Under the pieces are notes generated by a model. That model did no database searches and was not told the origin of the DNA. It was given only the letters and a program-made list of their open reading frames with translations. Positions 1 to 27,117 of a DNA stretch of 64,000 nt are shown here, one piece after another. The position numbers and the translations under genes were made by a program. Source of the stretch: Paraphysomonas bandaiensis. Its lineage: Eukaryota; Protista; Chrysophyceae. The stretch is taken from assembly GCA_965644295.1 (NCBI GenBank), contig CBFFRP010000380.1, forward strand, positions 257,301 through 321,300, given 5' to 3'. The number at the start of each line of letters is the position of its first letter. Within the stretch, counting starts at the first letter, position 1.

Positions 1-3000
1 TATACTGTGTTGTTTTCTTCTTTTATCTTGTCTGCTGTAGGTGCAGAGAGTATTTCAATAAACAAAAAATCTACACTACAGGAATTTGTTACTAAACAAT
101 CGTGGCCATATTGATGACTTACAGTAGATTTATTGGAGCAGTGAAGATTGCCACAACTATAGAAATAATAATAAAAATCTGCAAAAAATTAAATTACACG
201 GAAACGGAACAGACAATACATTACCTTCACAGACATTGCAATGGGAGATGATTCACACAAATATGAATCATCAGCATCAGCATCCTCAACCCAGCGACAT
301 ACAGAAGTATCCACATCAAACGGAGATTTCCTTCGTACACATTCCCTCTCCGTGGTATATCCACTACACTCGCCTTCATCATTCGGGTACTGTAAATCAT
401 AACATACGGCTACAACCAAGCACAGTTCAATACATGGAAAATATTGAGTGAAGTTCTTACCCAGAATAAACATCAGCATACTCTGTACAGTCAACAGATG
501 TACCCCTGTGAGCATACGCACACTATCGCCATTGGAGCCATTAGCAGTGAACAACACTAAGTATCTGTCACAAAAGTATGAAATACACAACAGCCATAAA
601 TGGTATTATCGATCTACCGGTGGTGCTTGCATATTTCATCCCATAGCCGCAATAATGCCGGTTTCGTACGGTAAACAGACGGGAAAACTTCGTTTACATA
701 AGATGTCAAGTAGGCCTTGACATCACTTTTATCCATTGTAGATCTAGCAATTTCCTTCTTTTTGCCAGACTCCTTGCCAACAACTCTATCAGAGTCATAA
801 TACTGCCGCAAAGAGCACAACAAGATGCCACTGAGTCCCCCGCTCCATCTGAAATTCTAGAATCACAACACAACTAGATGAAAAGAATGCACTTACAAGA
901 TGCCATACAGTAGAATCACCACAATAGTATCTTCCAAGTCAGAAACCGAATTTAGGTCATCTGCAGTAGTCACCGTAGTTGAAAAATCGTTAACCACGAG
1001 AGTAGATATCGCAACCACCTGCACACACACAAACGCATCCAATGAAACAGAAGCCGGTATATGATGTCGAATTATACCTCTAAAACTTTCGACTGTTTGA
1101 CAGCACTATTAAGTCGTCGAGAAGTAGCTGTGGTATTGCTTATCGCTAAAGTACAAAAACAAGTCGTATCACTCTCAGTGAAATGTTGCAACTCACAGGT
1201 GTACAAGCTCTTTCCGGCAATAATATCACATGATCTTTTGACATTTATATCGGGACAGAGTGTTTCCATAATCGCATATGTGCCATTGCACATATGGGTT
1301 ACCGTAATATCACCTTTGAGGCCTGAGCATGTCAATTCGTGAACTGACCAATCACCATCCATGCAAGTAGTGTTGACAACTTGACCAGTATTCAGCATAA
1401 GCCTTTCTTCTTTCGAATTTCTTATCACAACAGTAATATTCGGCTGATTAGTCGTCCATTGAACAGCATTCAGACGAATTCGTACCACATTTGAAGTAAA
1501 CATTGAGGCATTCTTGTAGACTTTGGGTTTAACAGACATCACTGCAACTCGTTGGCTATCAAGAGCAAGACCAGATAAAATGAGTTGTGAAGTTGCAATA
1601 TCAAGGTGGGACTCAATATCTGACTGCGGCAATGCAAGAGACAGGTTGTTACTGCCACCAAAACAAGCAAAAGCCAAACGAAATAATTCTGTAGACACAT
1701 ATTTAGGGCTCAGTCCCACAGTCATCTCATTTAACACAGTATCAGCAAAACTATCAAGGCCATTAACAACCTCTTGTAATATATTCTCTCTTTTTTGCTC
1801 GCCCGGGAGAAAAGTTGCTATCGTAGCCTGCGAAATTGAATCCAAGGACATGAAGACCTCAGAGTAGGCCTCGGAAGGAACTAATGTGCTGGTTGAGGCA
1901 TCCAGAATAGAGGATGCTATTGTCAACACTGCTGAAGACACATTCTCAGAAATTGTATCCATCGATTGAGTAATGGAAGATAGAAAAGATGCCAAATGAG
2001 CAATGCTGTCAATTGTAGGATCGTCCACCTTGGAAACACTCAACAAAAGCACTGCAAGTTGACTACGTATACTCTCAGTTGTCATGAAACTTTCCTCTAA
2101 TATATCACAAGCACTGCCATAATACCCATCGTTGCACTGACATACAACATCGCACGAATGATCTCCAACATCACAACGGTCCACAAGTGTTCCAACGTTT
2201 GCATCAACGAATAGACATCTACCATTACTAGAGCAGTTATTCACACAAGATTTAGACATTCGCTCACATACAGAAAACCCGTATTCGGTGCTTTCTTCAC
2301 ACGACTCCCACATGTCGCAGTCTGTATTCGTAGAGCAATTCCGCAATGTCCATTTAGACAAAGCAATTTCAAGTTGACTCATATCGTAACACATCGAATT
2401 GTACTCATTCACAACCCAATAGTAGCCTGCAATGCAGTCACCACAAATGTTTCGCGTAGAAGTGCAAGTCGAGCGATTAAAAGCAGAACAGCCCATTAAA
2501 ATCATACAGTCAACGCCATTCAAGACAGAACTCACAACAGATAAAGTCTCCTTCTGAGCATCAATATTACCATCACTGGAGCTTATCAGATGCCCCATTG
2601 TGCGCAAGAGAGTCGACGATGTCATCTGGGGATCGTTAACTATTAACGACACTGATTCAGAGCTATATGCATTGAGCACATCAAACACTCGCACTTGACA
2701 CAGCAATAAGTCATCATTGGATTTACCTGGCGGAAGCAATGACGTTGCAAAGGAATACTCTGATCGCCCGTGAACAACTTTACTAGTTTGTGTCTCTATA
2801 TAGGCAAATTCATAAGATAATGGGATGTCGTCGTCACTCCATTCAGAGGCTGCAAACTTAAATTTCGTTATCATAGCAGTGCCGTTAGAAGGAACAACTT
2901 CAAAAACACCTGGGGAAGGAGGAACATTAATTGCGATTGCAAGAGACGACCTGGCTCCAGACGACATCAATGAAAACACATATGGTGTCGATTTCGGAGA

Positions 3001-6000
3001 CAGTACTAATGCTGGAATAACAAGATTAAACTGGTGACTCCCATGACGTAATGGCGCCGTTACCGCTGTTCGAGATACAGACTTTAAATCAAGCAATGGA
3101 TCATCCACAGCCCATGTTACAGTGGCCATATCCTGTAGTAATACTGATCCATAAAGTATTAAATCATCAGAGGGATTAATTTTAATCGCTCCATTTCTTG
3201 AAGTTATTGACAGTTGAGGCGCTGACCGTTCGGTCACTGTTATCATTACCGTTTCGTGGGACTGTCGAGTGGAATCATGTACCGTAACAGTGATAGCATA
3301 CACATTACCCGTGGGTGTGGAATAAGGAGATGTAATCATTACATGCGATAATGCAGGCTGAAGTTGCAAATCACAAGTTGAGGAGAGAGTTGGCTCCTGC
3401 TGATAACACGACCACGAAAACGACAGCCCCGCCGATGTTCGTGATTCCTCGTCATAGCTTCCCGCCGCATCCACAATTAAGATGTCTCCCTGACGAATAG
3501 TCCGCTCAGTAGCTCCAGATATTGCCGCTACAATCTTACTAGAAGGAACAGACAGTTGAACCGCAGCACTAGAGGAAAGACCCGACAGCGGGCTCACTAC
3601 AGTTACCACGACGTCATACACTGAATTTGGTCGAAGGGCGAACGCAGGAAGTTTAAATTTAGTTTTGTCAGATGATATCGACGTCAGAGTGTGGTCTATT
3701 ATACCATCTCTGCTTGCCGTCCATGTATAAATCAAGTTGGCAAACGATCGAGTGCCATCACAAAAAGAAGTGTACCCTTGTGCTTGCAAAAGTAAAGGGG
3801 AGGCCATGCTAACTGTCCTTGACTGTTGGCCAGCTATTGAAACAACTGGTAAGGCAGAATCAACAGCACTAATTTGATGGAACCCTATACCACATGCGCC
3901 AAGAAAATTGCATAACTTGATTTCAAAGGTGTATACGTAACCAGCTACGAGCACACCGCGTGGGAGAGAAGTAGGTGGACTTATGGTATACTGAGTAGCA
4001 AAAAACTGCTCAACTGCCACAGCGGATTCCACACTAGAGCTGGTCACATTTACTGCAATAGATGACCAGCGCCTACCACCAGAAGGCCATGATGAGGTCA
4101 AATCGATCAGAACCTCGTCACACCGTCCTACAGTACTTGGAGCAGATATCGCTACTACCGGAATCATTGGTACTAGAGGAGCTACGATAGGTATTGAAAT
4201 GGAGGGAACAGACGTCCACTGGTCGCATACTGATAAATCAGAACGACACGGAGCTCGAACGGAGTTCGTACGCACAGAAACATAATCTCCCACCACTGGT
4301 CTATTTATACCTTTAAGCGTTATCGTAAGAGTCGAACTCGTACTCCACAGACAACTTGACTCTGATGCACCAGTCAGTATAAGAACATCTTCACATGAGA
4401 ATGAACTCAACTTCCTCGCTTGATCAGTTGGAGAGTCAAAGACTACTATGATATACATACCATCAGATGAAAATGCAGCACTTGACAACCTTGGGGTTGT
4501 TGGTTCTACATTAGGCGACTCCAATATAAAAGATTGAACTCCGTTATTTCCAAAAACAACTTCAAATTCCTGTGCAGAAGGGCCACCGAGGGATACGGAA
4601 GTATAATACGAGCCAGGGCTACTGCTACTAGTCAATGAAACTTTGTGGATATCGTCCCAATTCTTACCATTCAGCGTAACACTGGATGGGAATAACATAT
4701 TTGACAACAAACCACTGGAATTACCAATCGAAAGAGAAACCACTAAATCATTTGATGGAGTGCCAGTGGCATGGATTGATATAAAATTAGTCACAACATT
4801 CCCACTCACAAAAGATGTGCCAGTCAGGGTGACAATGACCCGCTTGCAGCACTGCGTTTTAATGTCATGTCTGCTCTCCATTACAGTGACGATGGCATCA
4901 GACACAATATCGACGCTTTTCGCGAGGCAGTACACATCATACAACGTCCCAGACTGAAGTCCATTCAAAGTAATTACTTGCGGTGCTGTTGTGGAATCAA
5001 CTAAGGCGAACTTATTCTGAGCCACGATTCTACCAAAAGATTCAGGAATTACTCCAGAAAAGAAGCTTGCACAGAACACTATCCCTTCTTGTGAAAACCG
5101 CACATACACATCGATAGACGACTCAGTGGTAGATGTAAACACACTCAGAAGTTCAGTTGGTACCGATGACGGCAGTCCAGTTGGACAGAATGAAGGCTGT
5201 CCTGATGGAAAACTACTTGGCATAACTGTAGGACTACCACTTGGTAGTCCAGACGGTAATCCAGTTGGTTGCCCCGATGGAATACACGTAGGAGCTCCGG
5301 TTGGTTGTCCTGAGGGCTGGCTCGAGGGCTCACCACTTGGCACACCTGTTGGTTTACCAGAGGGTCGGCATGAGGGCCAACCAGAAGGTTGACTAGAAGG
5401 TTCAGAAGTCGGTTTGCAGGTCGGCTGACCTGTTGGATCCATTGAAGGCCCGCCGGTAGGCAGGGATGTTGGCTGTCCACTTGGCTCCCAAGTTGGCTTT
5501 CCAGTTGGTTCCCCAGTTGGCTCAGAAGTCGGCTGTCCTGTTGGGACTTCACTTGGTTTCCCAGTCGGAGCAGATGTCGGTTGACCAGTTGGCTGAGTGC
5601 TTGGATGACTACTTGGCTGGCCTGTGGGCTGACCAGTTGGACAACTAGAAGGTTGGCCCGTAGGGAGCGCGGAAGGCTCCCCAGTTGGTTCAGCAGATGG
5701 TTGTCCAGTGGGTTCACCAGTCGGTTGACCAGTTGGCTGGCCGGTGGGTTCGCATGTCGGCTGTCCAGAGGGCTGACCAGATGGTGCAGATGTTGGCTGG
5801 CTTGTTGGTTGTCCAGTGGGCTGACCAGATGGTGCAGCAGTGGGTAGGCTTGTTGGCTGTCCTGATGGTTGACCACTAGGCAGACCACTTGGATGTCCAG
5901 TGGGTTCACCAGTCGGTTGACCAGTTGGCTGACCGGTGGGTTCGCATGTCGGCTGGCCAGAGGGCTGACCAGATGGTGCAGATGTTGGCTGGCTTGTTGG

Positions 6001-8232
6001 TTGTCCAGTGGGCTGACCAGATGGTGCAGCAGTGGGTAGGCTTGTCGGCTGTCCTGATGGTTGACCACTAGGCAGACCACTTGGATGTCCAGTGGGTTCA
6101 CCAGTCGGTTGACCAGTTGGCTGACCGGTGGGTTCGCATGTCGGCTGGCCAGAGGGCTGACCAGATGGTGCAGATGTTGGCTGGCTTGTTGGTTGCCCAG
6201 TGGGCTGACCAGATGGTGCAGCAGTGGGCAGGCTTGTTGGCTGTCCTGATGGTTGACCTGTGGGTCCACTTGATGGTTGACCACTAGGCAGACCACTTGG
6301 ATGTCCAGTGGGTTCACCAGTTGGTTGGCCAGTTGGCTGACCGGTGGGTTCGCATGTCGGCTGGCCAGAGGGCTGACCAGATGGTGCAGATGTTGGCTGG
6401 CTTGTTGGTTGTCCAGTGGGCTGACCAGATGGTGCAGCAGTGGGCAGGCTTGTTGGCTGTCCTGATGGTTGACCTGTGGGTCCACTTGATGGTTGACCAC
6501 TAGGCAGACCACTTGGATGTCCAGTGGGTTCACCAGTTGGCTGACCAGTTGGCTGACCGGTGGGTTCGCATGTCGGCTGGCCAGAGGGCTGACCAGATGG
6601 TGCAGATGTTGGCTGGCTTGTTGGTTGTCCAGTGGGCTGACCAGATGGTGCAGCAGTGGGCAGGCTTGTTGGCTGTCCTGATGGTTGACCTGTGGGTCCA
6701 CTTGATGGTTGACCACTAGGCAGACCACTTGGATGTCCAGTGGGTTCACCAGTTGGCTGACCAGTTGGCTGACCGGTGGGTTCGCATGTCGGCTGGCCAG
6801 AGGGCTGACCAGATGGTGCAGATGTTGGCTGGCTTGTTGGTTGCCCAGTGGGCTGACCAGATGGTGCAGCAGTGGGCAGGCTTGTTGGCTGTCCTGATGG
6901 TTGACCTGTGGGTCCACTTGATGGTTGACCACTAGGCAGGCCACTTGGATGTCCAGTGGGTTCACCAGTTGGTTGGCCAGTTGGCTGACCCGAAGGCAGC
7001 GTAGAAGGCTTCCCAGTTGGTTCACCAGATGGATGTCCAGTGGGCTGGCCTGTAGGATGACAAGTGGGGTAACCAGAAGGTTGTCCAGTTGGTTGGGAAG
7101 TAGGCGAGGGAGAATCGAGGTCAGTCATAAAAACTAGTCGTACTCTACTATTGCGGTAATCTGCAACCAAAACATAAGTGTCACTGGGACTCAAAGCAGC
7201 GTCAATCGGACTCCAAAACCGTGCATTAGTACCAATACCGTCCGAACTCCCACTGCTTGATCCTCCGGCAATGGTAGTCACCACACCTGTACTCAATATG
7301 CATTTACGAATTCGATGCGAATTGAAATCGGCGACTACGACGTAAGTGTCGTCACTTGATATGTCAATATTATATGGCTTATCGAATCTCGCATTTGTTC
7401 CAGTCCCATCTAGATATCCAGTAACAGACCCTGCAATAGTAGTCACAACCCTGGTAGACAACACAAGCTTACGTAGGCGATGATTATCACGATCTGCAAC
7501 TACAGCAAAGCTGCCATCACTCGACACAGTCACGCCACGTGGACCATTAAATCTAGCTGATGTGCCCGTTCCATCACTTGATCCTGGCGACGATCCAGCG
7601 ATTAATGACACAACTTGGGTAGAGATTATAACTTTCCGGATTCTGTCATTTGAACAGTCTACGATTACGGCCAGAACTCCATCTCCAGAAATAGCAACAC
7701 CACGAGGAAACGTCAACCGCGCGTCCGTTCCAACACCGTCAGAATTACCAGCATGCGTGCCTACAAATGTAGAAACTTCTCCAGTAGATATGATAACTTT
7801 GCGAATTCTGTGATCATTGTTTCCAGCCACAAGAGCAAAACTATTATCTGCAGACAGTGCAATACCATAGGGTTCGTCGAAGGCTGTGGAATCTGAAATT
7901 GTAGTGACCTCTGATGTAGATATAACAAGCTTCCGGATTTTATTTCCATAAGCGGCTGCAATTACTGCAAAACTTCCATCACTTGATATGCTTATTCCAC
8001 CAGGTCTATGTATTTCGGCGTTAGTACCAATCCCATCCTGAGAGTTGTCCCCATCTCCAGCAAATGTGATGACCTGTTGTGCAACACCTTGTAAAGCTAC
8101 TAAATTACGGTGAAAGTCTGGTGGAGGTGTATTGATGATTGATGTATTCGAGACAGCCAAGTCTTGAACAGTCATATCAACACAGTAACAAACACATACA
8201 CAAGTCAGTAGGCGGTATAAGTGAGCACGCAT
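1..8232 (-). CDS. Giant multi-exon adhesion-receptor / polycystin-1(REJ)-like membrane protein, paralog A (NHL repeats, PxGQ stalk, REJ/PKD-like, EGF-like, GPS-like, multi-TM); 3' end lies beyond window start
   Basis: The 2386-aa first exon has a hydrophobic N-terminus, NHL repeats (DGxGTxARF..PxGI), a (P-T/S-G-Q)n stalk, REJ-like motifs (LSFSWSC, PPSPGVFEVVPSNGTAMITKFKF, DIPLSYEF), an EGF-like CSSNGRC..CQC..YYGSAC and a GPS-like TTCFC. GT-AG introns (e.g. 1077-1019) join it to TM-encoding exons (TIVVILLYGILWSGGLSGILLC) and to the ORF fragments at 614-823 and 189-590. Confidence 0.88.
251..979. repeat. Inverted near-identical block 3 (partner 18673-19399), covering TM exons and introns
   Basis: Reverse complement matches 18673-19399 almost base for base, introns included. 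The ORF track shows duplicated ORFs (614-823 vs 18826-19035; 448-720 vs 18929-19201). Confidence 0.92.
2528..4851. repeat. Inverted near-identical block 2 (partner 14824-17147), REJ-like module
   Basis: 2324-bp colinear inverted match with scattered substitutions. The proteins are near-identical from CCK.VIVTLTG to KETLSVVSS. Confidence 0.95.
5690..6990 (-). repeat. Coding tandem repeat of paralog A: 216-bp (72-aa) units plus 192-bp deletion variants, built on a 12-bp PxGQ period
   Basis: Shadow ORFs recur at 6061, 6277, 6493, 6709 and 6925 (216-bp period) and at 5889/6081 (192 bp). The degenerate PxGQ stalk extends about 5150-7110. Confidence 0.95.
7221..7875. repeat. Inverted near-identical block 1 (partner 9403-10060), NHL propeller
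   Basis: EPYGIALSADNSF...DGIGTNA is nearly identical at DNA level between the two genes, with one small in-frame indel (THAG vs APTAG). Confidence 0.93.
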
Positions 8233-8938
8233 TAGTCACTAATGTATCCTCCTAGCTAAATTAAGATAGATTATATGAAGCCATAGTGAATATACAGTAT
8301 GTGAAGTGGGGACTGCTGTGAGATAATTAATCAGTCGTACTATATCAGCATACGAGACGTCACTGTTCAACCAACACACAACTAACTTCCCTTTATTGTT
8401 AACCGCATTACTCGTAAAATTGGTCACGGACACAAAAAATTGGACCACTCTCCTCTATTTTCTCCTAATCCCCTCCAAAATCTAGAAAAAGTATGTTTTT
8501 TTGAATTGATATGTCCATGAATGTACACAATGGATGTGCTGCTATTCATTTATCCAGTCATTTTCACCGTATTATATATCTGTATTCGGTCTTGGAATTC
8601 TTGGAATTCCTAGCAACAGGGATATCGATATCTGGATATCTAATACGGGTGGGGTGGGAATAAACCATATACCGTATATCGTACATATGTATGTACATAG
8701 AGAGAGTAGCGTATCACGCACATGTTTCAATACTGTACTAGAAATACACACTGAAGAAGAAAGATGCCACAGATGTTGGAGTAGATTCTAATAGACCAGA
8801 TTGTCTGATACGATTATTGGAATAGTGCCGATATGAAGCTCATGTGTGTATTTGTAGCACCTTCTTGTATTGGATGGTGTTATTATTTAAGCATTGTAGT
8901 AGATAACATCTACAGTGTGTTGGAGCGTTTGGGTGTCA
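8233..8938. promoter_or_regulatory. Putative bidirectional promoter between the divergent paralogs
   Basis: 706 bp between the divergent start codons (8232 on -, 8939 on +). No credible ORF. Function inferred from position only. Confidence 0.55.
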
Positions 8939-11900
8939 ATGAGTCTAGACGACTATATTCGAGCACTGATATTCTTTGCAGTAGTATGTTTTCCAATCCT
9001 AGGATATGAGGTTACACATACACTTGATGGGTATAATTCCAGTACCCCAACTTCGATATTTCAGCGGCGTTTGCAAGGTACCAAATTCAGACTACAATAT
9101 TCACATAACGTATACTTGCAGTACGAGCGAGCAGTAATTTTGAAGGAACTGCGGGTCAAGTCATTACTATTTCAGGAGTAATGGGAGAAGAACCGATGGT
9201 ATCAGACGGTGTGGGAACCAATGCACGATTCAAAGGCCCTGGTGGTACTAGCTTATCAAGTGACGGACGATTTGCAATCATTACTGATGCAAATGCTAAC
9301 CAGATTCGTAAACTTGATATGCTTAGTGCCCAAGTAACAACGGTTGCTGGAACTGGTGGGAACGGCGGAAACGACGGTGGATCAACCACTGCAACCTTCA
9401 ATGAACCCTATGGTATTGCACTGTCTGCAGATAATAGTTTTGCTCTTGTGGCTGGAAACAATGATCACAGAATTCGCAAAGTTATTATATCTACTGGAGA
9501 AGTTTCTACATTTGTAGGTGCGCCAACCGCTGGAAATTCTGACGGTGTTGGAACGGACGCGCGGTTGAGATTTCCTCGTGGTGTTGCTATTTCTGGAGAT
9601 GGAGTTCTGGCCGTAATCGTAGACTGTTCAAATGACAGAATCCGGAAAGTGATAATCTCTACCCAAGTTGTGTCATTAATCGCTGGATCGTCGCCAGGAT
9701 CAAGTGATGGAACGGGCACATCAGCTAGATTTAATGGTCCACGTGGCGTAACTGTGTCGAGTGATGGCAGCTTTGCTGTAGTTACAGATCGTGATAATCA
9801 TCGCCTACGTAAGCTTGTGTTGTCTACCAGGGTTGTGACTACTATTGCGGGGTCTGTTACTGGATATCTAGATGGGACTGGAACAAATGCGAGATTCGAT
9901 AAGCCGTATGGCATTGACATATCAAGTGACGACACTTACGTCGTAGTCGCCGATTTCAATTCGCATCGAATTCGTAAATGCATATTGAGTACAGGTGTGG
10001 TGACTACCATTGCCGGAGGATCAAGCAGTGGGGGTTTGGACGGTATTGGTACTAATGCACTTTTTTCGGGTCCAATAGGTATTTCCATAAGCCTAACTGA
10101 CTCTTATGTACTCGTTGCTGATAGAGACAACTTTGCGTTAAGAGTGTTATTTTTACAAGACGTCAGAGCCGAAGCACACAGCAAATCAACTATACACCCT
10201 ACCTTTATACCAACGCATTCACCCACATGGCAACCAACGGATTCACCGACTCGTGTACCGACCGTATCGCCAACAGTGGTTCCGACCAATGCACCAACAG
10301 ATGTTCCCACTCGTTCGCCAACGGCTGTACCAACAAATACACCGACACGGCAACCAACGGATTCACCGACTCGTGTACCGACCGTATCGCCAACAGTGGT
10401 TCCGACCAATGCACCAACAGATGTTCCCACTCGTTCGCCAACGGCTGTACCAACAAATACACCGACACGGCAACCAACGGATTCACCGACTCGTGTACCG
10501 ACCGTATCGCCAACAGTGGTTCCGACCAATGCACCAACAGATGTTCCCACTCGTTCGCCAACGGCTGTACCAACAAATACACCGACACGGCAACCAACGG
10601 ATTCACCGACTCGTGTACCGACCGTATCGCCAACAGTGGTTCCGACCAATGCACCAACAGATGTTCCCACTCGTTCGCCAACGGCTGTACCAACAAATAC
10701 ACCGACACGGCATCCAACGGATTCACCGACTCGTGTACCGACCGTATCGCCGACAGTGGTTCCGACCAATGCACCAACAGATGTTCCCACTCGTTCGCCA
10801 ACGGCTGTACCAACAAATACACCGTCACGGCAACCAACGGATTCACCGACTCGTGTCCCGACCGTATCGCCGACAGTGGTTCCGACCAATGCACCAACAG
10901 ATGTTCCCACTCGTTCGCCAACGGCTGTACCAACAAATACACCGACACGGCAACCAACGGATTCACCGACTCGTGTACCGACCGTATCGCCAACAGTGGT
11001 TCCGACCAATGCACCAACAGATGTTCCCACTCGTTCGCCAACGGCTGTACCAACAAATACACCGACACGGCATCCAACGGATTCACCGACTCGTGTACCG
11101 ACCGTATCGCCGACAGTGGTTCCGACCAATGCACCAACAGATGTTCCCACTCGTTCGCCAACGGCTGTACCAACAAATACACCGTCACGGCAACCAACGG
11201 ATTCACCGACTCGTGTCCCGACCGTATCGCCGACAGTGGTTCCGACCAATGCACCAACAGATGTTCCCACTCGTTCGCCAACGGCTGTACCAACAAATAC
11301 ACCGACACGGCAACCAACGGATTCACCGACTCGTGTACCGACCGTATCGCCGACAGTGGTTCCGACCAATGCACCAACAGATGTTCCCATTCGTTCGCCA
11401 ACGGCTGTACCAACAAATACACCGTCACGGCAACCAACGGATTCACCGACTCGTGTACCGACCGTATCGCCAACAGTGGTTCCGACCAATGCACCAACAG
11501 ATGTTCCCACTCGTTCGCCAACGGCTGTACCAACAAATACACCGACACGGCATCCAACGGATTCACCGACTCGTGTACCGACCGTATCGCCGACAGTGGT
11601 TCCGACCAATGCACCAACAGATGTTCCCACTCGTTCGCCAACGGCTGTACCAACAAATACACCGTCACGGCAACCAACGGATTCACCGACTCGTGTACCG
11701 ACCGTATCGCCGACAGTGGTTCCGACCAATGCACCAACAGATGTTCCCACTCGTTCGCCAACGGCTGTACCAACAAATACACCGTCACGGCAACCAACGG
11801 ATTCACCGACTCGTGTACCGACCGTATCGCCGACAGTGGTTCCGACCAATGCACCAACAGATGTTCCCATTCGTTCGCCAACGGCTGTACCAACAAATAC

Positions 11901-14900
11901 ACCGTCACGGCAACCAACGGATTCACCGACTCGTGTACCGACCGTATCGCCAACAGTGGTTCCGACCAATGCACCAACAGATGTTCCCACTCGTTCGCCA
12001 ACGGCTGTACCAACAAATACACCGACACGGCAACCAACGGATTCACCGACTCGTGTACCGACCGTATCGCCAACAGTGGTTCCGACCAATGCACCAACAG
12101 ATGTTCCCACTCGTTCGCCAACGGCTGTACCAACAAATACACCGACACGGCATCCAACGGATTCACCGACTCGTGTACCGACCGTATCGCCGACAGTGGT
12201 TCCGACCAATGCACCAACAGATGTTCCCACTCGTTCGCCAACGGCTGTACCAACAAATACACCGTCACGGCAACCAACGGATTCACCGACTCGTGTCCCG
12301 ACCGTATCGCCGATAGTGGTTCCGACCAATGCACCAACAGATGTTCCCACTCGTTCGCCAACGGCTGTACCAACAAATACACCGTCACGGCAACCAACGG
12401 ATTCACCGACTCGTGTACCGACCGTATCGCCGACAGTGGTTCCGACCAATGCACCAACAGATGTTCCCACTCGTTCGCCAACGGCTGTACCAACAAATAC
12501 ACCGTCACGGCAACCAACGGATTCACCGACTCGTGTACCGACCGTATCGCCGACAGTGGTTCCGACCAATGCACCAACAGATGTTCCCATTCGTTCGCCA
12601 ACGGCTGTACCAACAAATACACCGTCACGGCAACCAACGGATTCACCGACTCGTGTACCGACCGTATCGCCGACAGTGGTTCCGACCAATGCACCAACAG
12701 ATGTTCCCACTCGTTCGCCAACGGCTGTACCAACAAATACACCGACACGGCAACCAACGGATTCACCGACTCGTGTACCGACCGTATCGCCGACAGTGGT
12801 TCCGACCAATGCACCAACAGATGTTCCCACTCGTTCGCCAACGGCTGTACCAACAAATACACCGACACGGCAACCAACGGATTCACCGACTCGTGTACCG
12901 ACCGTATCGCCGACAGTGGTTCCGACCAATGCACCAACAGATGTTCCCACTCGTTCGCCAACGGCTGTACCAACAAATACACCGTCACGGCAACCAACGG
13001 ATTCACCGACTCGTGTACCGACCGTATCGCCGACAGTGGTTCCGACCAATGCACCAACAGATGTTCCCACTCGTTCGCCAACGGCTGTACCAACAAATAC
13101 ACCGTCACGGCAACCAACGGATTCACCGACTCGTGTACCGACCGTATCGCCGACAGTGGTTCCGACCAATGCACCAACAGATGTTCCCATTCGTTCGCCA
13201 ACGGCTGTACCAACAAATACACCGTCACGGCAACCAACGGATTCACCGACTCGTGTACCGACCGTATCGCCGACAGTGGTTCCGACCAATGCACCAACAG
13301 ATGTTCCCACTCGTTCGCCAACGGCTGTACCAACAAATACACCGACACGGCAACCAACGGATTCACCGACTCGTGTACCGACCGTATCGCCGACAGTGGT
13401 TCCGACCAATGCACCAACAGATGTTCCCACTCGTTCGCCAACGGCTGTACCAACAAATACACCGACACGGCAACCAACGGATTCACCGACTCGTGTACCG
13501 ACCGTATCGCCGACAGTGGTTCCGACCAATGCACCAACAGATGTTCCCACTCGTTCGCCAACGGCTGTACCAACAAATACACCGACACGGCAACCAACGG
13601 ATTCACCGACTCGTGTACCGACCGTATCGCCGACAGTGGTTCCGACCAATGCAGCAACACATGTTTCCACAGGACACCCAACACAATTCCCGTCATTTCG
13701 TATTTTGAAACCGTCAATTTCGCTGCCGCTTCTCCCGACTAGTACCCCTTCCGTGTCGACAACATCTGTTCCTACAAGTCCAAGTGGCCATTTAGTTTTA
13801 TCGTACCGACCTACGGACTCTGCTACTGCACGACCAACTAGTGTGTCGAGTGGTATCCCTACTTTTGTTCACCCTGAACAACCAACAAACGTGCCGACTA
13901 TATTGCCAACGTTGCCTCACTCAATATTACCTACTACAGGACCAACGGATGTGCCCAGTGGTATCCCTACTTTCATTCCCAGTGAACACCCAACGAACTT
14001 ACCAACGTTTTCTCACTCAATAATACCTATTACAGGACCAACTGGTGTGCCCAGTGGTATCCATACTTCTATTCCCATGGAACGACAAATCGAAACCCCA
14101 ACATCGGTTCCATGGATGGCATCAACCGCTGTTCAAAGTTTTCATCCTACTTTGAAATCCACTGTAACTATTGCTTCTTTGATGCCGTCTTCGCTGTCCT
14201 CTGTAAGTGATTCGAATTCCTACACAACAGTTCCCACCTACTTAACCACTATTACAGCTCCAGTGTCTTTTTCCCCGACTTCGTCGTTGTCGTATGGGCC
14301 TACAGTATCACTTTCTGAGAAAGCAACTGCTAACCCGACTTACACACCTACGGATTATCGAGATAGAATCGACAATCCCACGCTCTGTCCATTTCTATTA
14401 CCAAGTCATGAGCCGTCTACGTACAACGTTTTGTCTCCACTTCAACATACCGCTTTTCCGACTGCTTTGAATACGGTAGTTCCGACTGTAGTGTCCACAA
14501 GACGTATATACCGTACCCCTCGTATTGTCGTCATGACAATCTGGAGTTCTCAGTACAGCGTTGCTGTCACTATTGGTTTGTCTGACCAGGGAACTGTTTT
14601 CTGCGGTCTGTTCAAGCATGGCACCGTTCAGCCGCCTGTCAATGCTATTGTTGCCCAAAATCGATTTGTGGCTATAGATTCATCATTGCAATTACGAACT
14701 GTGAGCTTGAAGGGACTTCAGCCGCTCACGATGTACGATATTTATTGTCTTGCGAAAGCGAATTTAGCAATCACCACGACAACTGAGATAGATTCATTCA
14801 GGAAAGTAACGTCTACGACTAGTTGCTGCAAGCAGGTCATTGTCACCCTGACTGGCACATATTTTGTGAGTGGGAATGTAGTGAAAAATTTTATTTCAAT

Positions 14901-17900
14901 CCATGCCACTGGCGCTCCATCTAATGATTTAGTGATTTCTCTTTCGATTGGTAATTCCAGTGGTTTATTGTCGAATATGCTATTCCCATCCAGTGTTACA
15001 CTGAATGGTAAGAATTGGGACAATATTCTCAAAGTTGCATTGACGGGTAGAAGTACCCCTGGCTCGTATTATACTTCCGTATCCCTCGGTGGCCCTTCTG
15101 CACAGGAATTTGAAGTTGTTTTTGGAAATAACGGAGTTCAATCTTTTATATTGGAGTCGCCTAATGTAGAACCAACAACCCCAAGATTATCAAGTGCTGC
15201 ATTTTCATCTGATGGTATGTATATCATAGTAGTCTTTGACTCTCCAACTGATCAAGCGAGGAAGTTGAGTTCATTCTCATGTGAAGATGTTCTTATACTG
15301 ACTGGTGCATCAGAGTCAAGTTGTCTGTGGAGTACGAGTTCGACTCTTACGATAACGCTTAAAGGTATAAATAGACCAGTGGTGGGAGATTATGTTTCTG
15401 TGCGTACGAACTCCGTTCGAGCTCAGTGTCGTACTGATTTATCAGTATGCGACCAGTGGACTTCTGTTCCCTCCATTTCAATACCTATCGTAGCTCCTCT
15501 AGTACCAATAATTCCGGTAGTAGCGATATCTGCTCCAAGTACTGTAGGACGGTGTGACGAGGTTCTGATCGACTTGACCTCATCATGGCCTTCTGGTGGT
15601 AGGCGCTGGTCATCTATTGCAGTAAATGTGACCAGCTCTAGTGTGGAATCCGCTGTGGCAGTTGAGCAGTTTTTTGTTACTCAGTATACCATAAGTCCAC
15701 CTACTTCTCTCCCACGCGGTGTGCTCGTAGCTGGTTACGTATACACCTTTGAAATCAAGTTATGCAATTTTCTTGGCGCATGTGGTATAGGGTTCCATCA
15801 AATTAGTGCTGTTGATTCTGCCTTACCAGTTGTTTCAATAGCTGGCCAACAGTCAAGGACAGTTAGCATGGCCTCCCCTTTACTTTTGCAAGCACAAGGG
15901 TACACTTCTTTTTGTGATGGCACTCGATCGTTTGCCAACTTGATTTATACATGGACGGCAAGCAGAGATGGTATAATAGACCACACTCTGACGTCGATAT
16001 CATCTGACAAAACTAAATTTAAACTTCCTGCGTTCGCCCTTCGACCAAATTCAGTGTATGACGTCGTGGTAACTGTAGTGAGCCCGCTGTCGGGTCTTTC
16101 CTCTAGTGCTGCGGTTCAACTGTCTGTTCCTTCTAGTAAGATTGTAGCGGCAATATCTGGAGCTACTGAGCGGACTATTCGACAGGGAGACATCTTAATT
16201 GTGGATACGGCGGGAAGCTATGACGAGGAATCACGAACATCGGCGGGGCTGTCGTTTTCGTGGTCGTGTTATCAGCAGGAGCCAACTCTCTCCTCAACTT
16301 GTGATTTGCAACTTCAGCCTGTATTATCGCATGTAGTGATTACATCTCCTTATTCCACACCCACGGGTAATGTGTATGCTATCACTGTTACGGTACATGA
16401 TTCCACTCGAGAGTCCCACGAAACGGTAATGGTAACAGTGACCGAACGGTCTGCGCCTCAACTGTCAATAACTTCAAGAAATGGAGCGATAAAAATTAAT
16501 CCCTCTGATGATTTAATACTTTATGGATCTGTATTACTACAGGATATGGCCACTGTAACATGGACTGTGGATGATCCATTGCTTGATTTAAAGTCTGTAT
16601 CTCGAACAGCGGCAACGGCGCCATTACGTCATGGGAGTCACCAGTTTAATCTTGTTATCCCAGCATTAGTACTGTCTCCGAAATCGACACCATATGTGTT
16701 TTCATTGATGTCGTCTGGAGCCAGGTCGTCTTTTGCAATCGCGGTTAATGTTCCTCCTTCCCCAGGAGTTTTTGAAGTTGTTCCTTCTAACGGCACTGCG
16801 ATGGTAACGAAATTTAAGTTTGCAGCCTCTGAATGGAGTGACGACGACATCCCATTATCTTATGAATTTGCCTATATAGAGACACACATTAGTAAAGTTG
16901 TTCACGGGCGATCAGAGTATTCCTTTGCAACGTCATTGCTTCCTCCAGGTAAATCCAATGATGACTTATTGCTGTGTCAAGTGCGAGTGTTTGATGTGCT
17001 CAATGCATATAGCTCTGAATCAGTGTCGTTAATAGTTAACGACCCCCAGATGACATCGTCGGCTCTATTGCGCACGATGGGGCATCTGATAAGCTCCAGT
17101 GATGGTAATATTGATGCTCAGAAGGAGACTTTATCTGTTGTGAGTTCCGTGCTGAACCGTAGGAATTGCTCCAGTGCTCCTCGGTGCTCAAATTTTAATC
17201 GAAATGGCTGCAGTGCTGTTGCAAATACTTGCGGGAATTGCTTACTGGGATATTTCGGTACTGATGGTGACGATAATTCAATGTGCCACCACCTGAGCAG
17301 TCTTGCTGTTTTTGTACCATCAAGGTTACCTTCTTTGTGTATGTCCGACTTCGACTGTGCCCCATGGGAATTTTGCTACGAAAATTCGATGAATGGGTTT
17401 CCGGTGTGCAATATAAAGCTGAAGGAATGTAAGGGTGGGTGTTCTGGTCACGGCATCTGCTTTTTTAGAGATCGCAATACCAGGTTAGAAATAAATGCAT
17501 GCTTTATGAGCGACTATACTTGTGAGGCTGTTTGCATATGCGAAAGCGGGTTTACAGGGAGTAATTGTGGCATGCACTACGAAGATTTTCTTGTTAAGCG
17601 GAATATTCGCAGTCAACTTGCATTCCTTTTGTACAATATTTCAAGGGTTGATGATGATTCAGCGGATAATATTGCATCGTGGGAATCATTATTGTCTTCA
17701 ATCACCCAAAACGTCCAAGAAATTTCTGTAGACATGGCTCGTGTAACGCTGAGTGTGGTGTCCTCTATTTTGAATGCGTCATATAGCTACACTTCTTCAT
17801 TGATGACTCTTTCCGGAGCCGTCAACTCCCTTGATGCTGTTGCAGAGGCAGCGGTGTTATTTCGTTCTCAGGGTCATAAAAGTTGGAGTTCCACTCGTGA

Positions 17901-20900
17901 TATTGTTGACTTGCTTGGTACATACGGTAGTACTATCACGGGATTGATGGAAGCAAGTGAGAGTTCTGTGGAAACAGTGGCCAATATGTTTCGGATTACC
18001 ACGACTTTTTATATTCCTGGGAGTGAGACACCCATCGTGATCCCGCAAACGAACATTGAACATTTCATGAATGTTTCTCCGATTTCTGTGATCTTGTCTT
18101 CTGAAAATGTAACAAATTATCAACGCGTTGTGTTGATTAATCTAAAATCAACGCTCTATAAAGACTTCAACAATTTTTCATCTGATGTTATGCGAATAAA
18201 GTTGATAGGTGATGACTCGCCCTCAATGACCATTGCATTAAGAAACTTTAATACCGAGATACCACTTGCGCAGAGAAGCTTCGTACTGAATACCACATGC
18301 GCTGAGAGTGATTTTTCTGTTCATAATTTGAATTGTCCAAGTGTCAATGGTGATATTAGAGTCACACATATATGTAACGGCTCTTTTGCTACAATTGAAA
18401 CCCACTGCCCTATTGTGGAGTGGCAGCGATCTTGCAAAGTACTAGACGGGGGAGCTGACTATAGTTGCTTTATGAAGTCATTTTCTCAAGTAAGCACTAC
18501 TTGTGTGTGCGATCCTGTTACAGCAATCAGAAGCGGTGAGGGACGACACCTCGCTGGCTCTTTTCACGACACCGGTATATTAGAGGTATGTGGATTTGGT
18601 ACTTAAATCGTGGAATGACCAAGTGGCGTGAAGGTTGTTGCAATTTCGACATTGATTGTAAACAGTTTCTTCACTACGGTGACTACTGCAGATGATCTAA
18701 ATTCGGTTTCTGACTTGGAAGATACCATTGTGGTGATTCTACTATATGGCATCTTGTAAGTGCATTTCCTTCTAGTTGTCTTCTGATTCTAGAATTACAG
18801 ATGGAGCGGGGGGCTCAGTGGCATCTTGTTGTGCTCTTTGCGGCAGTATTATGACTCTGATAGAGTGGTTGGCAAGGAGTCTGGCAAAAAGAAGGAAATT
18901 GCTAGATATACAATGGATAAAAGTGATGTCAAGGCCTACTTGACATCTTATGTAAACGAGGTTTTCCCGTCTGTTTACCGTACGAAACCGGCATTATTGC
19001 GGCTATGGGATGAAATATGCAAGCACCACCGGTAGATCGATAATACCATTTATGGCTGTTGTGTATTTCATACTTTTGTGACAGATACTTAGTGTTGTTC
19101 ACTGCTAATGGCTCCAATGGCGGTAGTGTGCGTATGCTCACAGGGGTACATCTGTTGACTGTACAGAGTATGCTGATGTTTATTCTGGGTAAGAACTTCA
19201 CTCAATATTTTCCATGTATTGAACTGTGCTTTGGTTGTAGCCGTATGTTATGATTTACAGTACCCGAATGATGAAGGTGAGTGCAGTGGATATACCACGG
19301 AGAGGGAATGTGTACGACGGAAATCTCCGTTTGATGTGGATACTTCTGTATGTCGCTGGGTTGAGGATGCTGATGCTGATGACTCATATTTGTGTGAATA
19401 TCCTCCGGAGGCATTCAACATCAGAGTAGGAATGTTATCAATCGATATCTGTTTTTATATCTCTTCAACAGAGCTTTGTCATTATATCTATCGTCGTGGC
19501 GATATTCACTGCTCCTATTAACCTGCTGTGAGTACTTAATAATTATAATGTCGTCGTTGTGTGACTGTTACTTGTTTTAGCGTTGATTTTTTATTTATCG
19601 AAGTTCTATCGGCACCAACAGCGAATGCTTTGAATGTGCGATCCGCAGATGAAACTGTGTTGAGAAACGCAATTCGCATAGGTCGCCGCATATCTGCCGT
19701 TACAATAGTGTCTGTGTCGGCTGCGCAACAACGGCTGATGAGGTTGCACCAACGTGCCTCCATACGAGGTGTATTTTCCCTCCAGACTATTCGTACAGTA
19801 CCCGAGGCTGCCTCCAATGCGCACTTGTTAGCTACTCGGTCTGCAGAGACTCTACTTGTGGATATACAAGATCGTATGGGCCATCTTGAAGCTCGACGAA
19901 AAACCATGCGCAAGGAATCTGAGTCTCTTCATTTAAAGCATAAGTTGGAAAAGCATAGAAAGTTTCTCAGAGAACGGACTTCTCGTGTACAGACAAAGAA
20001 AGAGTTACAATCTATTGAAATGGCAAATTATACAGATTCTACACTGCAAGACTTGTTTATCGAATTGACTGTCGACATATCGGAACAACGCCGGGTATTG
20101 AAGCGAATTCAGCAGGAAGGTTTTGATGCTATGTGGGGTGTGGACCCAACTGGAGAGTTCTCTCGACAGCGGGAGCTTACGTTTCTGTGTATCCCTCGCA
20201 CCTGCAGTGTGGAGCGAGCTATAAAGTCTGAATTGAAGTATGTTCGCGATGAAACTCAAGCGAAATTTGAGAAGCTGAGATTTGCTTCTGATGCTCAAAT
20301 TGGAATTGAGATATTGCATCAATTTTTGATGGATATACTGGGGCGTGACACTCCCGTTGCGAAAGTGAGTACTGTAACGTAGTTATGTTGTTTCTGACAC
20401 CCCATGATTAGATATTTTTGACCAAATCTGAAGAAGATTTTCGACATTCATACGTCGTCACGAAATTTGTTAAGGCGATAGCATGGAATTGTGTCGTTGT
20501 ACTAAATCTTTTTTTGTGAGTACCCCCCTATGCTTAAGTTTTATTCTTTATTGTTGCTACACCAGTGTTTGGTTTTCTATGCTACGTGGCCTTCAACGTG
20601 GATATCATTGGCAGGTAGGCCCAGTGTGAATATCGCAAAGAACTTGGGTTATTGATGTACTTTCACACAGAAACTCTACATGATTGCATGTGTGATGCAA
20701 CTCGTCATCGAAATATTGTTCTATGAGGTAAAGGCACTCTATTTTATAGATAAGGTATAATATTGTGTTTGTTTAGACGTCAGAGTGTGCTATTATTCAT
20801 TTTTTTATCCCTGACTTGGCGCGTAATGAGGTGCACACTGCTAGTTTTGCACTGCATCAAGCGGTAAATAAAATATGCTCGTCATCCCTAGATGCTGCTG

Positions 20901-22033
20901 CAAATGTCATACTTGATGCACCGCACTACCTCTTTGTGTCTACAAACCTGGCCAAGAGGTTTCCAAATCTACTCGAGAGTGCTATTGTAATGAGTTATCA
21001 CACCTACTCTCCTGGAGAGTTTTCCAAGAAATGGAGAGTGAGTCACTCAACTACGATTGACGCCAATGTCAGTCCATGGTCTCGGTCGAATAGAAGAGTA
21101 TCGAGGTTTGCTGTTTCCTCAGCACTGTTTGGATTCATGCAGCATATGGGAGCTATGTCTCCAACTGTTCAGCGTGTAACAATTCATAGCTTACAACCCC
21201 TCGTTGTCAGCAGCCTTTTTTTGCTGTGGGTGTCTCTCTGGACTTATCCATTGTGGAGTATTCCGGTGGCGTTTGTGATCATATACAAATTATATGAATG
21301 TGTCCGCGGTCATAAAATCGGGAGATATATTTCTCCAAATAACAACAGTGGTGACATTTACCCTTTGGTTGCTGATATTGAGATTGACACCAAGCCAGCA
21401 ATAGCTCAGCAGAGCATCCATAGTCGTGAAGTATCTGTTCCCGCCGCTTTACCCGTAGTGCGTTTAGAAATCAATGAATCTGATGTCAACACAACGAATG
21501 AGGAGTTAGTGCCTTTGAAGTCGGACTTAACAGATATTACGCACGATTTATCGAATGCTCAGCATAATTTCAGCAGAAAGAGCAATAGTTTTAATACGCA
21601 TGGGAAATCATTTAGTCGGGACAGCGAAGATTCGGATCCTTGTATGTGTATGCTTAATCAACGAAATGAACTCTGTAGTTATGACTTTGATGACGAGTCG
21701 TCTTTTACTACTGACCTCGGTGATTGTGATAACATTTCATATTCAGATTGTGATAGTGTTTGCCATGATTATAATTCATATACAGGTTATGATAGTGAAC
21801 GTGATGTCTCTCGTAAGCCATCCAGCGTAGGGGTTTCAGAAGCGTTGCGTGAAGTGTTTGACGAAGAGCTTCCACGTTTTGGTGTGGTTCAAAAAATATT
21901 TCGTTTTGTATCTGGCGAGTCTTTTACAGTGGACAACTCTGAGGAGAGTGAACAGGTGTATTCTGATAGCGATATCATTTATCATAATGGTTACGACGAT
22001 AGCGATACTTTGAACGAACAAATGCGATTTTGA
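8939..22033 (+). CDS. Giant multi-exon adhesion-receptor / polycystin-1(REJ)-like membrane protein, paralog B
   Basis: Exon 1 (8939-9077) encodes a signal peptide, MSLDDYIRALIFFAVVCFPILG...QRRLQ. A 44-nt GT-AG intron (9078-9121) joins it in frame to the 3141-aa ORF, which has the same domain order as paralog A. Further introns from about 18587 link TM exons and ORFs 19561-20382 and 20816-22033, ending in an acidic Ser-rich tail. Confidence 0.9.
9403..10060. repeat. Inverted block 1 partner (NHL)
   Basis: Reverse complement of 7221-7875. Confidence 0.93.
10231..13653 (+). repeat. Coding tandem array: about 28.5 copies of a 120-bp (40-aa) unit QPTDSPTRVPTVSPTVVPTNAPTDVPTRSPTAVPTNTPTR
   Basis: Exact 120-bp periodicity is visible in the sequence lines. 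There are five recurrent variant sites, one singleton and no indels. Confidence 0.98.
14824..17147. repeat. Inverted block 2 partner (REJ-like)
   Basis: Reverse complement of 2528-4851. Confidence 0.95.
18673..19399. repeat. Inverted block 3 partner (TM exons and introns)
   Basis: Reverse complement of 251-979. The 1-nt indel near 19230 lies inside an intron. Confidence 0.92.
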
Positions 22034-24391: not shown

Positions 24392-26429
24392 CTACACATT
24401 CTCTGAGTTAGCTTCTGGAATAACACTATCCCAAACATGTATTTTGTTACTATTTCTTTTAGGTGAAAGTGGCTGTGAGGGAGGTGGAGTATCGTTTCCA
24501 CTACTGTTGAGAATAGATAAAGCAGCGGGGGAAACGGACAACGGGATCACAGAGGCAGGACTGGGAGGATGGATCGATCTCGAACTCCCATCCGATAATA
24601 TCAGAGCATCCGAGACCGATTCCTCTACCCAGTACGTGGTCATAAGTCCCTTACCTTTGACAGATATCTCGCCACGACAACATAGCCGTATGTTATCGTA
24701 CATGGTTTCTACTATCTCTGGGGGACAACTATCATGGGGGTTCGCGACAGTCGAGATGGATGTTTGACTACGATAATCCGACACGATAGAATCTCCGTCA
24801 CTGTCTCTTTTAGGCGGCAGGAGCAACGTAGCAGTGTCAGAACTAATCTGGATACGCATAGGCTTGCTCGTGGACTCCATGCGGGAGGCCGTGTTCACTA
24901 CATCTCCAAAGAGACAATAGCGCGGCATCGCGCTTCCAACTATTCCTGCTACACACGGCCCACTGTGAACTCCAATCCGTGTGCGGATACCATCAGACCG
25001 ACCCACAGACAATAAATGTCGGTGGTGGAATCGGGACGCCTCAGCTATAACATCCATGGCGAAGTTAACGATCTTCGCAGCCGCTACAGAGGGATGCTCC
25101 ACCTCTGGACAACCCGCCACACACCTATATCACACAGAGGTTACCGTAGAAAGTGTAGGCAGTACAAAATTACATATACGCGTCCCCGATGGTCTCAACC
25201 TTGTACACGCCGTGCTTTATAGCGAGTTGATCATATATACTGTACAAGTCGTTGAGTAGTTCTACGATCTGAATAGGTTCCAGTTGGGATGCCATGGGAG
25301 TATAATCACAGATGTCACAGAAAAATATTGTTACCATATCAAACTTCTCAGAAAATATCTCACGTTTGTCTTTCGAGTAGTGCGCAATAGCCTTCGGTGG
25401 CAACATGGAGGCCAAGAGTCTTCTATTTTTCTCCTTGGCTCGAAGAAGAGAATACAGCATCCCAGCTAATGAGAGAGAGACAGCCGCGCAGGCAGCTAGA
25501 CATGGGTCTCGCCATATTGGCACCCACCCATCCCGTGGAGCTAGCTCGATTTTCCAATGAAGGTTATGAATCCGAACGTCTGTAGCGACGGAATCAGGGA
25601 TCGGCGCTTTACTGGTTTCGTATATGCAGTCCAACAGACCGAAAAGCATTTGAAAGCTAGGGTCGTTAGGCAAAATTTTGTCGGCAATGGAAGTTATCTT
25701 GAGGCTATAACCAGCGCTTTCCACAGACTCAATCGCTGGCAGATTACCTGATACAATTGTTGTGGCCTCCACAGCAGCACGTGAGAATCCGTAGAACTTC
25801 GTACCATCAGCTTCGTTGTAACAGAGTGTAGCAGTACAGTTGGAAGTCTCAATACCGCAACTTATACTGCTGTTGAAGGATTCTGCTTTTTTCCAGAGAG
25901 GTATAGCGGCGATTATTCCATACGAACTACCGTCACCAACAGGAAACGGCCCAAGCATAAACTCTTTGGACTGCAGTACTATTTCCATAAGTTCAGGATT
26001 ATACATGAAAATGTCGAATCCCTCGGGAAAAATTAGAAATCCATCACTCCAGTCAGGATTCGTAGGGTACGAGTAGTTAACTCGTCCAGCAAGATCGAAC
26101 GACAGCTGTTCTGTGAAATCGTTCCATTGTAAAATGTTTTCAGATACTATGTTGAATGATTTCGGTATATCAGGACAAGGTATAGCTATAAGATGTGCAC
26201 CTAACGCCAAAGCACCACGAGATATATCTGATATCTGCGTATGCAGTGCGGTGGCTAAATCTTGAGCCACTCCTTCCTTTGCATACTCTTTAGTATAATC
26301 AATCTCTGATTTGCTCAATATTAATACGATAACTACAGATGTTGCTGTTAATACAGTCCATAATAACCCACTTAACAATAATGATGATGAAAATTTTGGT
26401 GATAAATATTTAAAATGGTTTGATTTCAT
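24392..26429 (-). CDS. Receptor-type guanylate cyclase with CHASE-like extracellular domain (TM-CHASE-TM-class III cyclase), two exons
   Basis: Class III motifs [24 protein letters not shown] and [37 protein letters not shown] and C at the specificity positions indicate GTP. CHASE-like [22 protein letters not shown] and WKIELAP lie between two TMs. An intron at about 25173-25125 restores AYMCVAGCP. Confidence 0.9.
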
Positions 26430-27117
26430 TTGTTGACTATAGCCGCCTATCAGATATGAGATAGAGGAGATCACAGTGACTATGAATATCAATTGAATAC
26501 ATCATTCAATCTGTGGTTTCCTTTAATCTAACTATCTAACATGTATATATATGGGGCTCTAACTAGTGTGTTTAATAGTCATATGGAATAGTGTGTAGGT
26601 TTGTATAGTATATGTATGTACAGTAGAGTATGTATGGTAGATTTATATGGAAGTGGGTGGAGAGATGTACAAATTTCTGTTAGAGAGTTTTCCATTCCCA
26701 TCTTCTGGAGTCTACAGTATACGTTCCTCGTATGAGGGTGACCGGGGTGGTCAATCCCATCATCTACGTGTTTTTGTTTTTTGTCCAATCAGAATATTTC
26801 AAATTGTATATAGAAGATGGCTGACCGTGTGAGAGGGGAGTGGAATACTAGTAAAGGAAACGATAAGTAATACTGTAGACTACTGACACGTATAATGATC
26901 TGTTGAAAGAGAAGGCAGTGAGGTACACAGCAGTACACAGCAGCGTATAGAGAGAGAGTGAGAGTGCGAGTGTATGTATATATAGATGAGGAAACTGGTC
27001 GTTGTATCATTTGGTTGTGTTAATATGACTATAGGCTTGATACTTTAACTCCTTGTAAAGCGTATTGATATAGGGATATCTGCATTGAAGTTACAGGTTA
27101 GCATATAAGCCCCTCAT

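Follow-up and report, generated by a model that had tools for sequence, protein, structure and literature searches.

Gene conversion confined to four inverted islands as the probable origin of mosaic divergence in a head-to-head pair of giant receptor genes of Paraphysomonas bandaiensis

We analysed a stretch of 64,000 nucleotides from the chrysophyte Paraphysomonas bandaiensis (the window; G000:C380:257301-321300, contig CBFFRP010000380.1 of the 62.5 Mb, 669-contig assembly GCA_965644295.1), near the left end of which two giant paralogous genes, here called A and B, lie head-to-head and are transcribed divergently. The pair alternates between four nested inverted blocks, in which A and B are 96-98% identical, and five segments in which they have diverged to saturation, giving a divergence contrast of about 100-fold between neighbouring segments within one gene pair. 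We consider it likely that this pattern arose by mosaic concerted evolution, that is, by repeated gene conversion between the inverted arms that was confined to the four islands of homology. The preliminary description of the window had mentioned patchy concerted evolution by gene conversion as its more conservative reading, and this reading is well supported by the homogeneity of silent sites, by the clustering of mismatches and by the conflict in branch lengths described below.

Three inverted blocks had previously been described as identical. All three were recovered within about 15 nt of the borders first assigned to them, at a measured identity of 96-98%. From the centre of the locus outwards, block 1 lies in the NHL repeats (7208-7886 paired with 9392-10073; 682 nt, 96.0% identity), block 2 contains the REJ domain (2528-4851 paired with 14824-17147; 2324 nt ungapped with 54 mismatches, 97.7% identity) and block 3 contains membrane segments (244-986 paired with 18666-19406; 746 nt, 96.6% identity). 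Extending the comparison 10 kb leftward revealed a fourth nested block, whose arm in gene A lies left of the window (C380:255708-256918 paired with window positions 20044-21254; 1211 nt ungapped, 96.1% identity). With all four blocks included, the locus spans 24 kb, and the genes themselves are 10-13 kb each. The shared codon and exon register of the paired arms, which had also been remarked, is real, but it follows trivially from the homology of genes A and B. Searches with blastn between the blocks found no match of A to B in the intervening segments, and the GC content of the blocks gave no clear signal of biased conversion (0.44-0.46, versus 0.41-0.45 in the flanks).

A windowed codon comparison of identity and synonymous differences bore out the earlier observation that the segments between the blocks are diverged and sharply bordered. 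In these segments nucleotide identity is 40-58%, protein identity between A and B is 20-50% and the proportion of synonymous differences in the codon alignment is 0.57-0.96, which is saturated. The corresponding proportion in the REJ block is 0-0.25, and the switch to the values of the flanks takes place within a single 40-codon window. Changes between A and B in the REJ block comprise 25 synonymous and 29 nonsynonymous differences. Sites in likely introns within the blocks are as conserved as coding sites, and the interior of block 4 that lies outside the open reading frames (about 400 nt) is only 1.3% diverged, as conserved as the frames of that block. The mismatches of the REJ block are also clustered: the first 233 nt hold 21 of them, the following 1125 nt hold 8 and the final 900 nt or so hold 25, and they leave an identical run of 505 nt (P = 0.0005 against uniform scatter). 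The edges of the REJ block and of block 4 are frayed, in the case of block 4 on both sides.

Comparison with a paralog located 215 kb away on the same contig places these values in the context of the gene family. In the diverged segment S2, which lies between blocks 2 and 3, A and B share 34% amino acid identity, compared with 32-35% between either of them and the distant paralog; in the REJ block, they share 96%, compared with 43% to the same paralog. Maximum-likelihood trees join A and B as sisters both in the REJ block and in S2 (support 90/93 in S2, for which we used a reduced sequence set that omits the five closest subfamily paralogs, at C74:96022, C58:261756, C292:67545, C431:141826 and C35:62662). 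In S2 the terminal branches leading to A and B measure 1.77 and 1.36 changes per site; in the REJ block they measure 0.014 and 0.022.

We used public sequencing runs as a check on the arrangement of the locus and on its transcription. The data comprised 23 runs, all in the form of Logan k=31 contigs, which keep one path per bubble, and four of the runs were aligned to positions 7085-10205. The habitat labels of the runs indicate marine plankton. Contigs of run X1, taken here as the reference strain because it shares the organism label of the best holder and is possibly the source sample, show zero differences from the window: one joins the A-specific flank to A-type letters of block 1, and another carries the B-type letters. 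The presence of arm-specific letters in reference-strain contigs means that the blocks are not the product of an assembly collapse, and it contradicts the collapse in assembly or polishing that the preliminary description had allowed for. DNA contigs of X1 and of X5, a run with another organism label, each span the whole centre of the locus from 7833/7846 to 9432/9445; X5 has the same central contig with 12 substitutions in 1613 nt, and the divergence of strains in the unique centre is roughly 0.7-0.8%. Run X9, from another strain, behaves as RNA in that it covers both genes, gives no cover over 8297-8802 and carries the spliced form of a 44-nt intron at 9078-9121. Genes A and B are therefore both transcribed, and the approximately 500 bp between them are likely a bidirectional promoter. 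In three marine metatranscriptomes (X12, X17 and X20), 6-36% of sampled words from positions 4852-14823 are present, and the two genes or close relatives of them seem to be expressed in the sea.

The history that we favour would begin with an old inverted duplication, from which A and B would descend as head-to-head sister paralogs. Repeated, short and non-reciprocal conversion between the inverted arms, in which the repair of a break copies from the other arm, would then have kept the four islands 96-98% identical, while the five intervening segments would have escaped conversion and diverged to saturation. Segments with less than about 60% DNA identity would be unable to pair, and conversion tracts would consequently end at the edges of the islands, such that the mosaic would sustain itself. 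The clustered mismatches and frayed edges are the traces that repeated conversion tracts differing in age and end points leave. Occasional crossovers that invert an interval would be expected as a rare by-product, and not as the main process. We infer break repair as the mechanism, and we likewise infer that the escape of the diverged segments was aided by selection for differing heads and stalks.

Several points weigh against this history. In S2, the grouping of A with B as sisters depends on the reduced sequence set, its support is moderate, and both genes form long branches. Nor was conversion itself observed in progress. The nearest approach to this is a low-depth contig of run X13, which lies on the B arm with the B flank. 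Nine diagnostic sites in a row (9486-9750) are A-type in this contig, and from 9784 onwards it is B-type; counted as bubbles, five of A-type precede four of B-type (P about 0.035 if the nine bubbles are independent). In run X5, single sites switch type at 7432 and 9534, which may be artefacts of bubble popping. Together, these patterns are suggestive of strain-specific conversion tracts. Contig depth and missing arms were also considered as signs of strain-specific conversion and were dropped, as the reference strain's own contigs likewise keep one path per interval.

Another way to view the locus, and the one placed foremost in the preliminary description, is as a system for shuffling receptor modules. 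Crossovers in the four in-frame inverted blocks would recurrently invert the intervals that they enclose, and strains or cells would come to carry different chimeric receptor pairs, in up to 16 isomers and with their promoters swapped. Its geometry fits, in that the inverted blocks are nested and lie in homologous genes in the same frame, and the earlier deduction that a crossover in any block would yield two intact chimeric open reading frames is correct; only the count changes, since four blocks allow 16 locus configurations where three had given eight. In addition, the conversion signatures indicate that the arms do recombine, conversion-homogenised inverted paralog pairs drive recurrent inversions in Saccharomyces (PMC9731477) and Ogataea changes its mating type by a flip between inverted repeats (PMC4238957). 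If true, this reading would provide a recombinase-free eukaryotic analogue of the module-shuffling inversion systems of bacteria, of the shufflon or hsdS type. Nevertheless, we consider it unlikely. As had been noted before, there is no recombinase in the window: Pfam finds neither an integrase nor an invertase, and the sole recombinase-like match is the remnant of a DDE_3 transposase at 57178-57990 (minus strand, E = 5e-8), about 35 kb past the end of gene B. Furthermore, the arms differ by 2-4%, and most of these differences are older than the strain split at roughly 0.7-0.8%, so that exchange is slow. Even the near-identical 4-kb inverted repeats of the flip/flop region on Saccharomyces chromosome XIV re-invert only on evolutionary time, with no change in about 53,800 mitoses and 950 meioses (PMC9731477). 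Protein database searches aimed at chimeric A/B fragments from other strains returned only two distant REJ proteins and generic NHL proteins (32-47% identity), a result that is blank and not evidence of absence. The four runs aligned to the centre of the locus contained no strand-changing joints, although an inversion inside a block makes no new junction words, and k=31 contigs are therefore blind to it and cannot reveal isomers.

The locus is not a shufflon: it has neither a site-specific recombinase in the window nor short specific crossover sites, its repeats being homologous gene blocks of 0.7-2.3 kb. High-frequency shuffling is unlikely because of the missing recombinase and the 2-4% divergence of the arms, as the arms of known flip-flop systems driven by homologous recombination are almost identical. 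Rare inversions over the long history of the pair are plausible, and by analogy with such systems strains may differ in their arrangement.

Bacterial shufflons (such as R64 Rci/sfx) and phase-variable hsdS loci employ short sites or repeats, usually together with a tyrosine recombinase, and switch at high frequency. The A/B locus resembles them in having several inverted repeats within paralogous coding sequences, in a geometry that permits the in-frame swapping of modules, but its repeats are long blocks of gene sequence. Partial conversion between inverted paralogs is known from human RHD/RHCE, from the Hsp70Aa/Ab and Amy duplicates of Drosophila and from the arms of Y-chromosome palindromes. 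These cases have in common with A/B the inverted arrangement of paralogs, near-identity at silent sites, sharp borders and the lack of a dedicated enzyme; unlike them, the A/B pair has four nested islands in one pair of 10-13 kb genes, the 100-fold contrast and giant protist receptors of the REJ type as its products. The A/B locus is a new, clean example of a known process with an ordinary mechanism (for a review of the concerted evolution of paralogs, see PMC3924832), and it provides an unusually clean natural case in which conversion islands and segments diverged to saturation stand side by side in a single gene pair.

For inverted paralogs that are not only homogenised but also bring about recurrent inversion, the nearest parallel is the yeast flip/flop. 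As in A/B, the inverted paralogs are homogenised with no recombinase; the yeast interval has been re-inverted by homologous recombination, and its near-identical repeats end a 24-kb multi-gene region of which both orientations are observed (PMC9731477). The A/B repeats, in contrast, lie inside coding sequences, are 2-4% diverged and are known in one orientation. The mating-type flip-flop of Ogataea (Hansenula) polymorpha is likewise an inversion between inverted repeats by homologous recombination, and it changes which gene is expressed; it is an inducible, regulated system with a clear phenotype (PMC4238957), and the A/B pair shows no sign of such traits. The A/B pair supplies a concrete locus in which recombination-mediated swapping of modules could be sought.

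A second alternative reverses the roles of blocks and segments, in that the blocks would date a recent inverted duplication, 2-4% old, and the intervening segments of one copy would later have been replaced from other members of the family. The family does have at least 33 giant paralogs of this NHL/REJ receptor type in the genome, and its expansion proceeds through continuous duplications of 8-9 kb, some of them direct (contig C66, 89-98% identity) and others inverted. However, nowhere else in the genome is there any DNA-level likeness to a diverged segment, and the next paralogs are only about 38% identical in protein. A near-identical donor copy of any segment is absent elsewhere in the assembly, save for two B-derived fragments in transposon-rich contigs, so that the diverged segments do not stem from recent import from within the family. 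Moreover, A and B are still sisters in S2 (with the reduced sequence set), and the eight in-frame borders, placed where there is no flanking homology, would be implausible as the outcome of replacement. We therefore give this alternative very little credence. Marginally less credible again is the proposal that the blocks reflect purifying selection alone or an artefact of assembly or polishing: the blocks do cover recognisable domains (NHL blades, REJ, membrane segments), but purifying selection cannot explain silent sites and inter-frame sequence that are as conserved as replacement sites, and an artefact is at odds both with the difference-free reference-strain contigs, in which the A-type letters are continuous with the flank of A and the B arm shows B-type letters, and with the backing of both flanks and the centre by an RNA run and another strain's DNA run.

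Island-wise conversion also has a possible counterpart elsewhere in the family. A second head-to-head pair at C116:683-21235 consists of an 8.15-kb inverted repeat with 92.7% identity overall and a 4.4-kb spacer, and the N-terminal parts of its two genes differ. Its identity, followed from the inner end of the repeat outward, starts at 80-82%, rises to 96-100%, dips to 78-90%, recovers to 98-100% and ends at 81-85%. The dip is situated about 800 nt beyond the long open reading frame, which is the position of the diverged segment S3 in the A/B pair. Judged by these identity profiles, a recurrent process seems to have reached a later stage in the A/B pair, and the C116 pair would be a milder version of it.

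The open reading frames and Pfam domains bear out the description of A and B as a head-to-head pair of giant receptors. The long open frame of gene A occupies 1072-8232 on the minus strand (2386 amino acids) and that of gene B 9181-18606 on the plus strand (3141 amino acids). Both carry NHL repeats, a very long Pro/Thr repeat and a REJ domain (PF02010; E = 4e-47 in A and 6e-45 in B). Both genes run past the long frame via tiny introns into exons with hydrophobic segments, the content of which we took from an intron-less paralog on the same contig (C380:41845); in order, these exons encode the strand after a Cys-x-Cys GPS-like motif, a first transmembrane segment (TM1), a loop of about 65 amino acids, a second transmembrane segment (TM2) and a small Cys loop. 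Gene A ends about 2.2 kb left of the first base of the window, and the stop codon of gene B lies at 22033. The start of gene B as first read was incomplete, because the list of open reading frames alone missed its 5' exon, which begins with an ATG at 8939, encodes a signal-peptide-like sequence (MSLDDYIRALIFFAVVCFPILG) and is followed by the 44-nt GT..AG intron at 9078-9121 that is spliced in run X9. From these domains we predict that A and B are giant surface receptors of a common layout, with a signal peptide, an NHL beta-propeller, a Pro/Thr stalk, a REJ domain, a Cys-rich GPS-like region, several membrane segments and a cytosolic tail.

Read from its 5' end on the minus strand, gene A begins with its N-cap and 5' untranslated region (7887-8296), which include the signal-peptide-like start, the ATG at 8232 and the first blade, and to the outer end of which, at 8296, an RNA contig of X9 reaches. 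Arm A of block 1 (7208-7886) follows with about four NHL blades, and then the diverged segment S1 (4852-7207) with the last NHL blade, the Pro/Thr stalk and an adjacent domain of about 100 amino acids that is 31% identical to that of gene B. Beyond arm A of block 2, the REJ region (2528-4851), segment S2 of gene A (987-2527) holds the Cys-rich, EGF-like and GPS-like region with 34% amino acid identity to B. Arm A of block 3 (244-986) is interrupted by tiny introns and holds the last strand after the GPS-like Cys motif and the exon content through to the small Cys loop. The intergenic gap, which lacks cover in the RNA run and is the likely region of the bidirectional promoter, occupies 8297-8802.

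On the plus strand, the 5' end of gene B (8803-9391) comprises exon 1, the intron, whose spliced joint was seen, and a diverged first blade. Arm B of block 1 (9392-10073) leads into segment S1 of gene B (10074-14823), which is composed of the last blade, the Pro/Thr stalk, a unique region and the adjacent domain. After arm B of block 2 with its REJ domain (14824-17147), segment S2 of gene B (17148-18665) also holds the first short intron. Arm B of block 3 (18666-19406) is followed by the diverged segment S3 (19407-20043), in which a membrane segment ends and a cytosolic region starts, by arm B of block 4 (20044-21254), which includes the 400 nt or so between two open frames, and by a diverged C-terminal tail (21255-22033) that extends to the stop codon.

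The stalks are recent tandem arrays in both genes. That of gene B (10208-13670) contains 28.9 copies of a 120-nt unit, and that of gene A (5698-6990) is built of 192- and 216-nt tandem units, the copies being 98% alike in each case; the two stalks have different peptide repeats and no DNA similarity between them.

In their general plan, A and B resemble polycystin-1, PKDREJ, the sea-urchin REJ receptors and Ectocarpus Esi0130_0068 (PMC4700764), all of which have a large extracellular head, a REJ domain, a Cys-rich GPS-like region and several membrane segments. They differ from the polycystin type in carrying an NHL propeller head on a Pro/Thr stalk and in having no detectable PLAT or PKD-channel domain: neither is matched by Pfam in A or B, and TM1 is separated from TM2 by a loop of only some 65 amino acids. 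The Cys-rich region and the 3' exons gave no significant Pfam match even at E up to 1, and GPS in the Cys-rich region is a weak lead only (score 0.78). The HL-T cleavage motif is absent in A (CFCTLA) and in B (CVCDPV), and the paralogs on C66 carry CLCHLTS. The pair illustrates one way for a large, expanding family of giant receptors to retain common signalling cores while its heads, stalks and juxtamembrane regions diversify.

At least seven family members are clustered at C66:205001-325000, with 8-9 kb direct duplications of 89-98% identity and many internal tandem modules. The two B-derived fragments in transposon-rich contigs are 99-100% identical to B and lie on C507 (2900-4128) and C224 (4730-5465). 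The C224 fragment corresponds to window positions 17758-18493; in the C507 fragment, which lies between copia-like and Ty3-like elements, window positions 19418-19683 directly abut 16802-17768 at a GGT microhomology. This permutation of the sequence points to an intermediate that was tandem or circular, with transposons inserting afterwards. At three clustered sites (16952-16956), A and B have the same letters and the C507 fragment has others; either the fragment has acquired a cluster of mutations, or a very short conversion from A to B took place after the fragment was copied. Finally, just downstream of gene B, a catalytic domain of the adenylate/guanylate cyclase type (24392-26492, minus strand) is split over two open frames, which are probably one gene with an intron.

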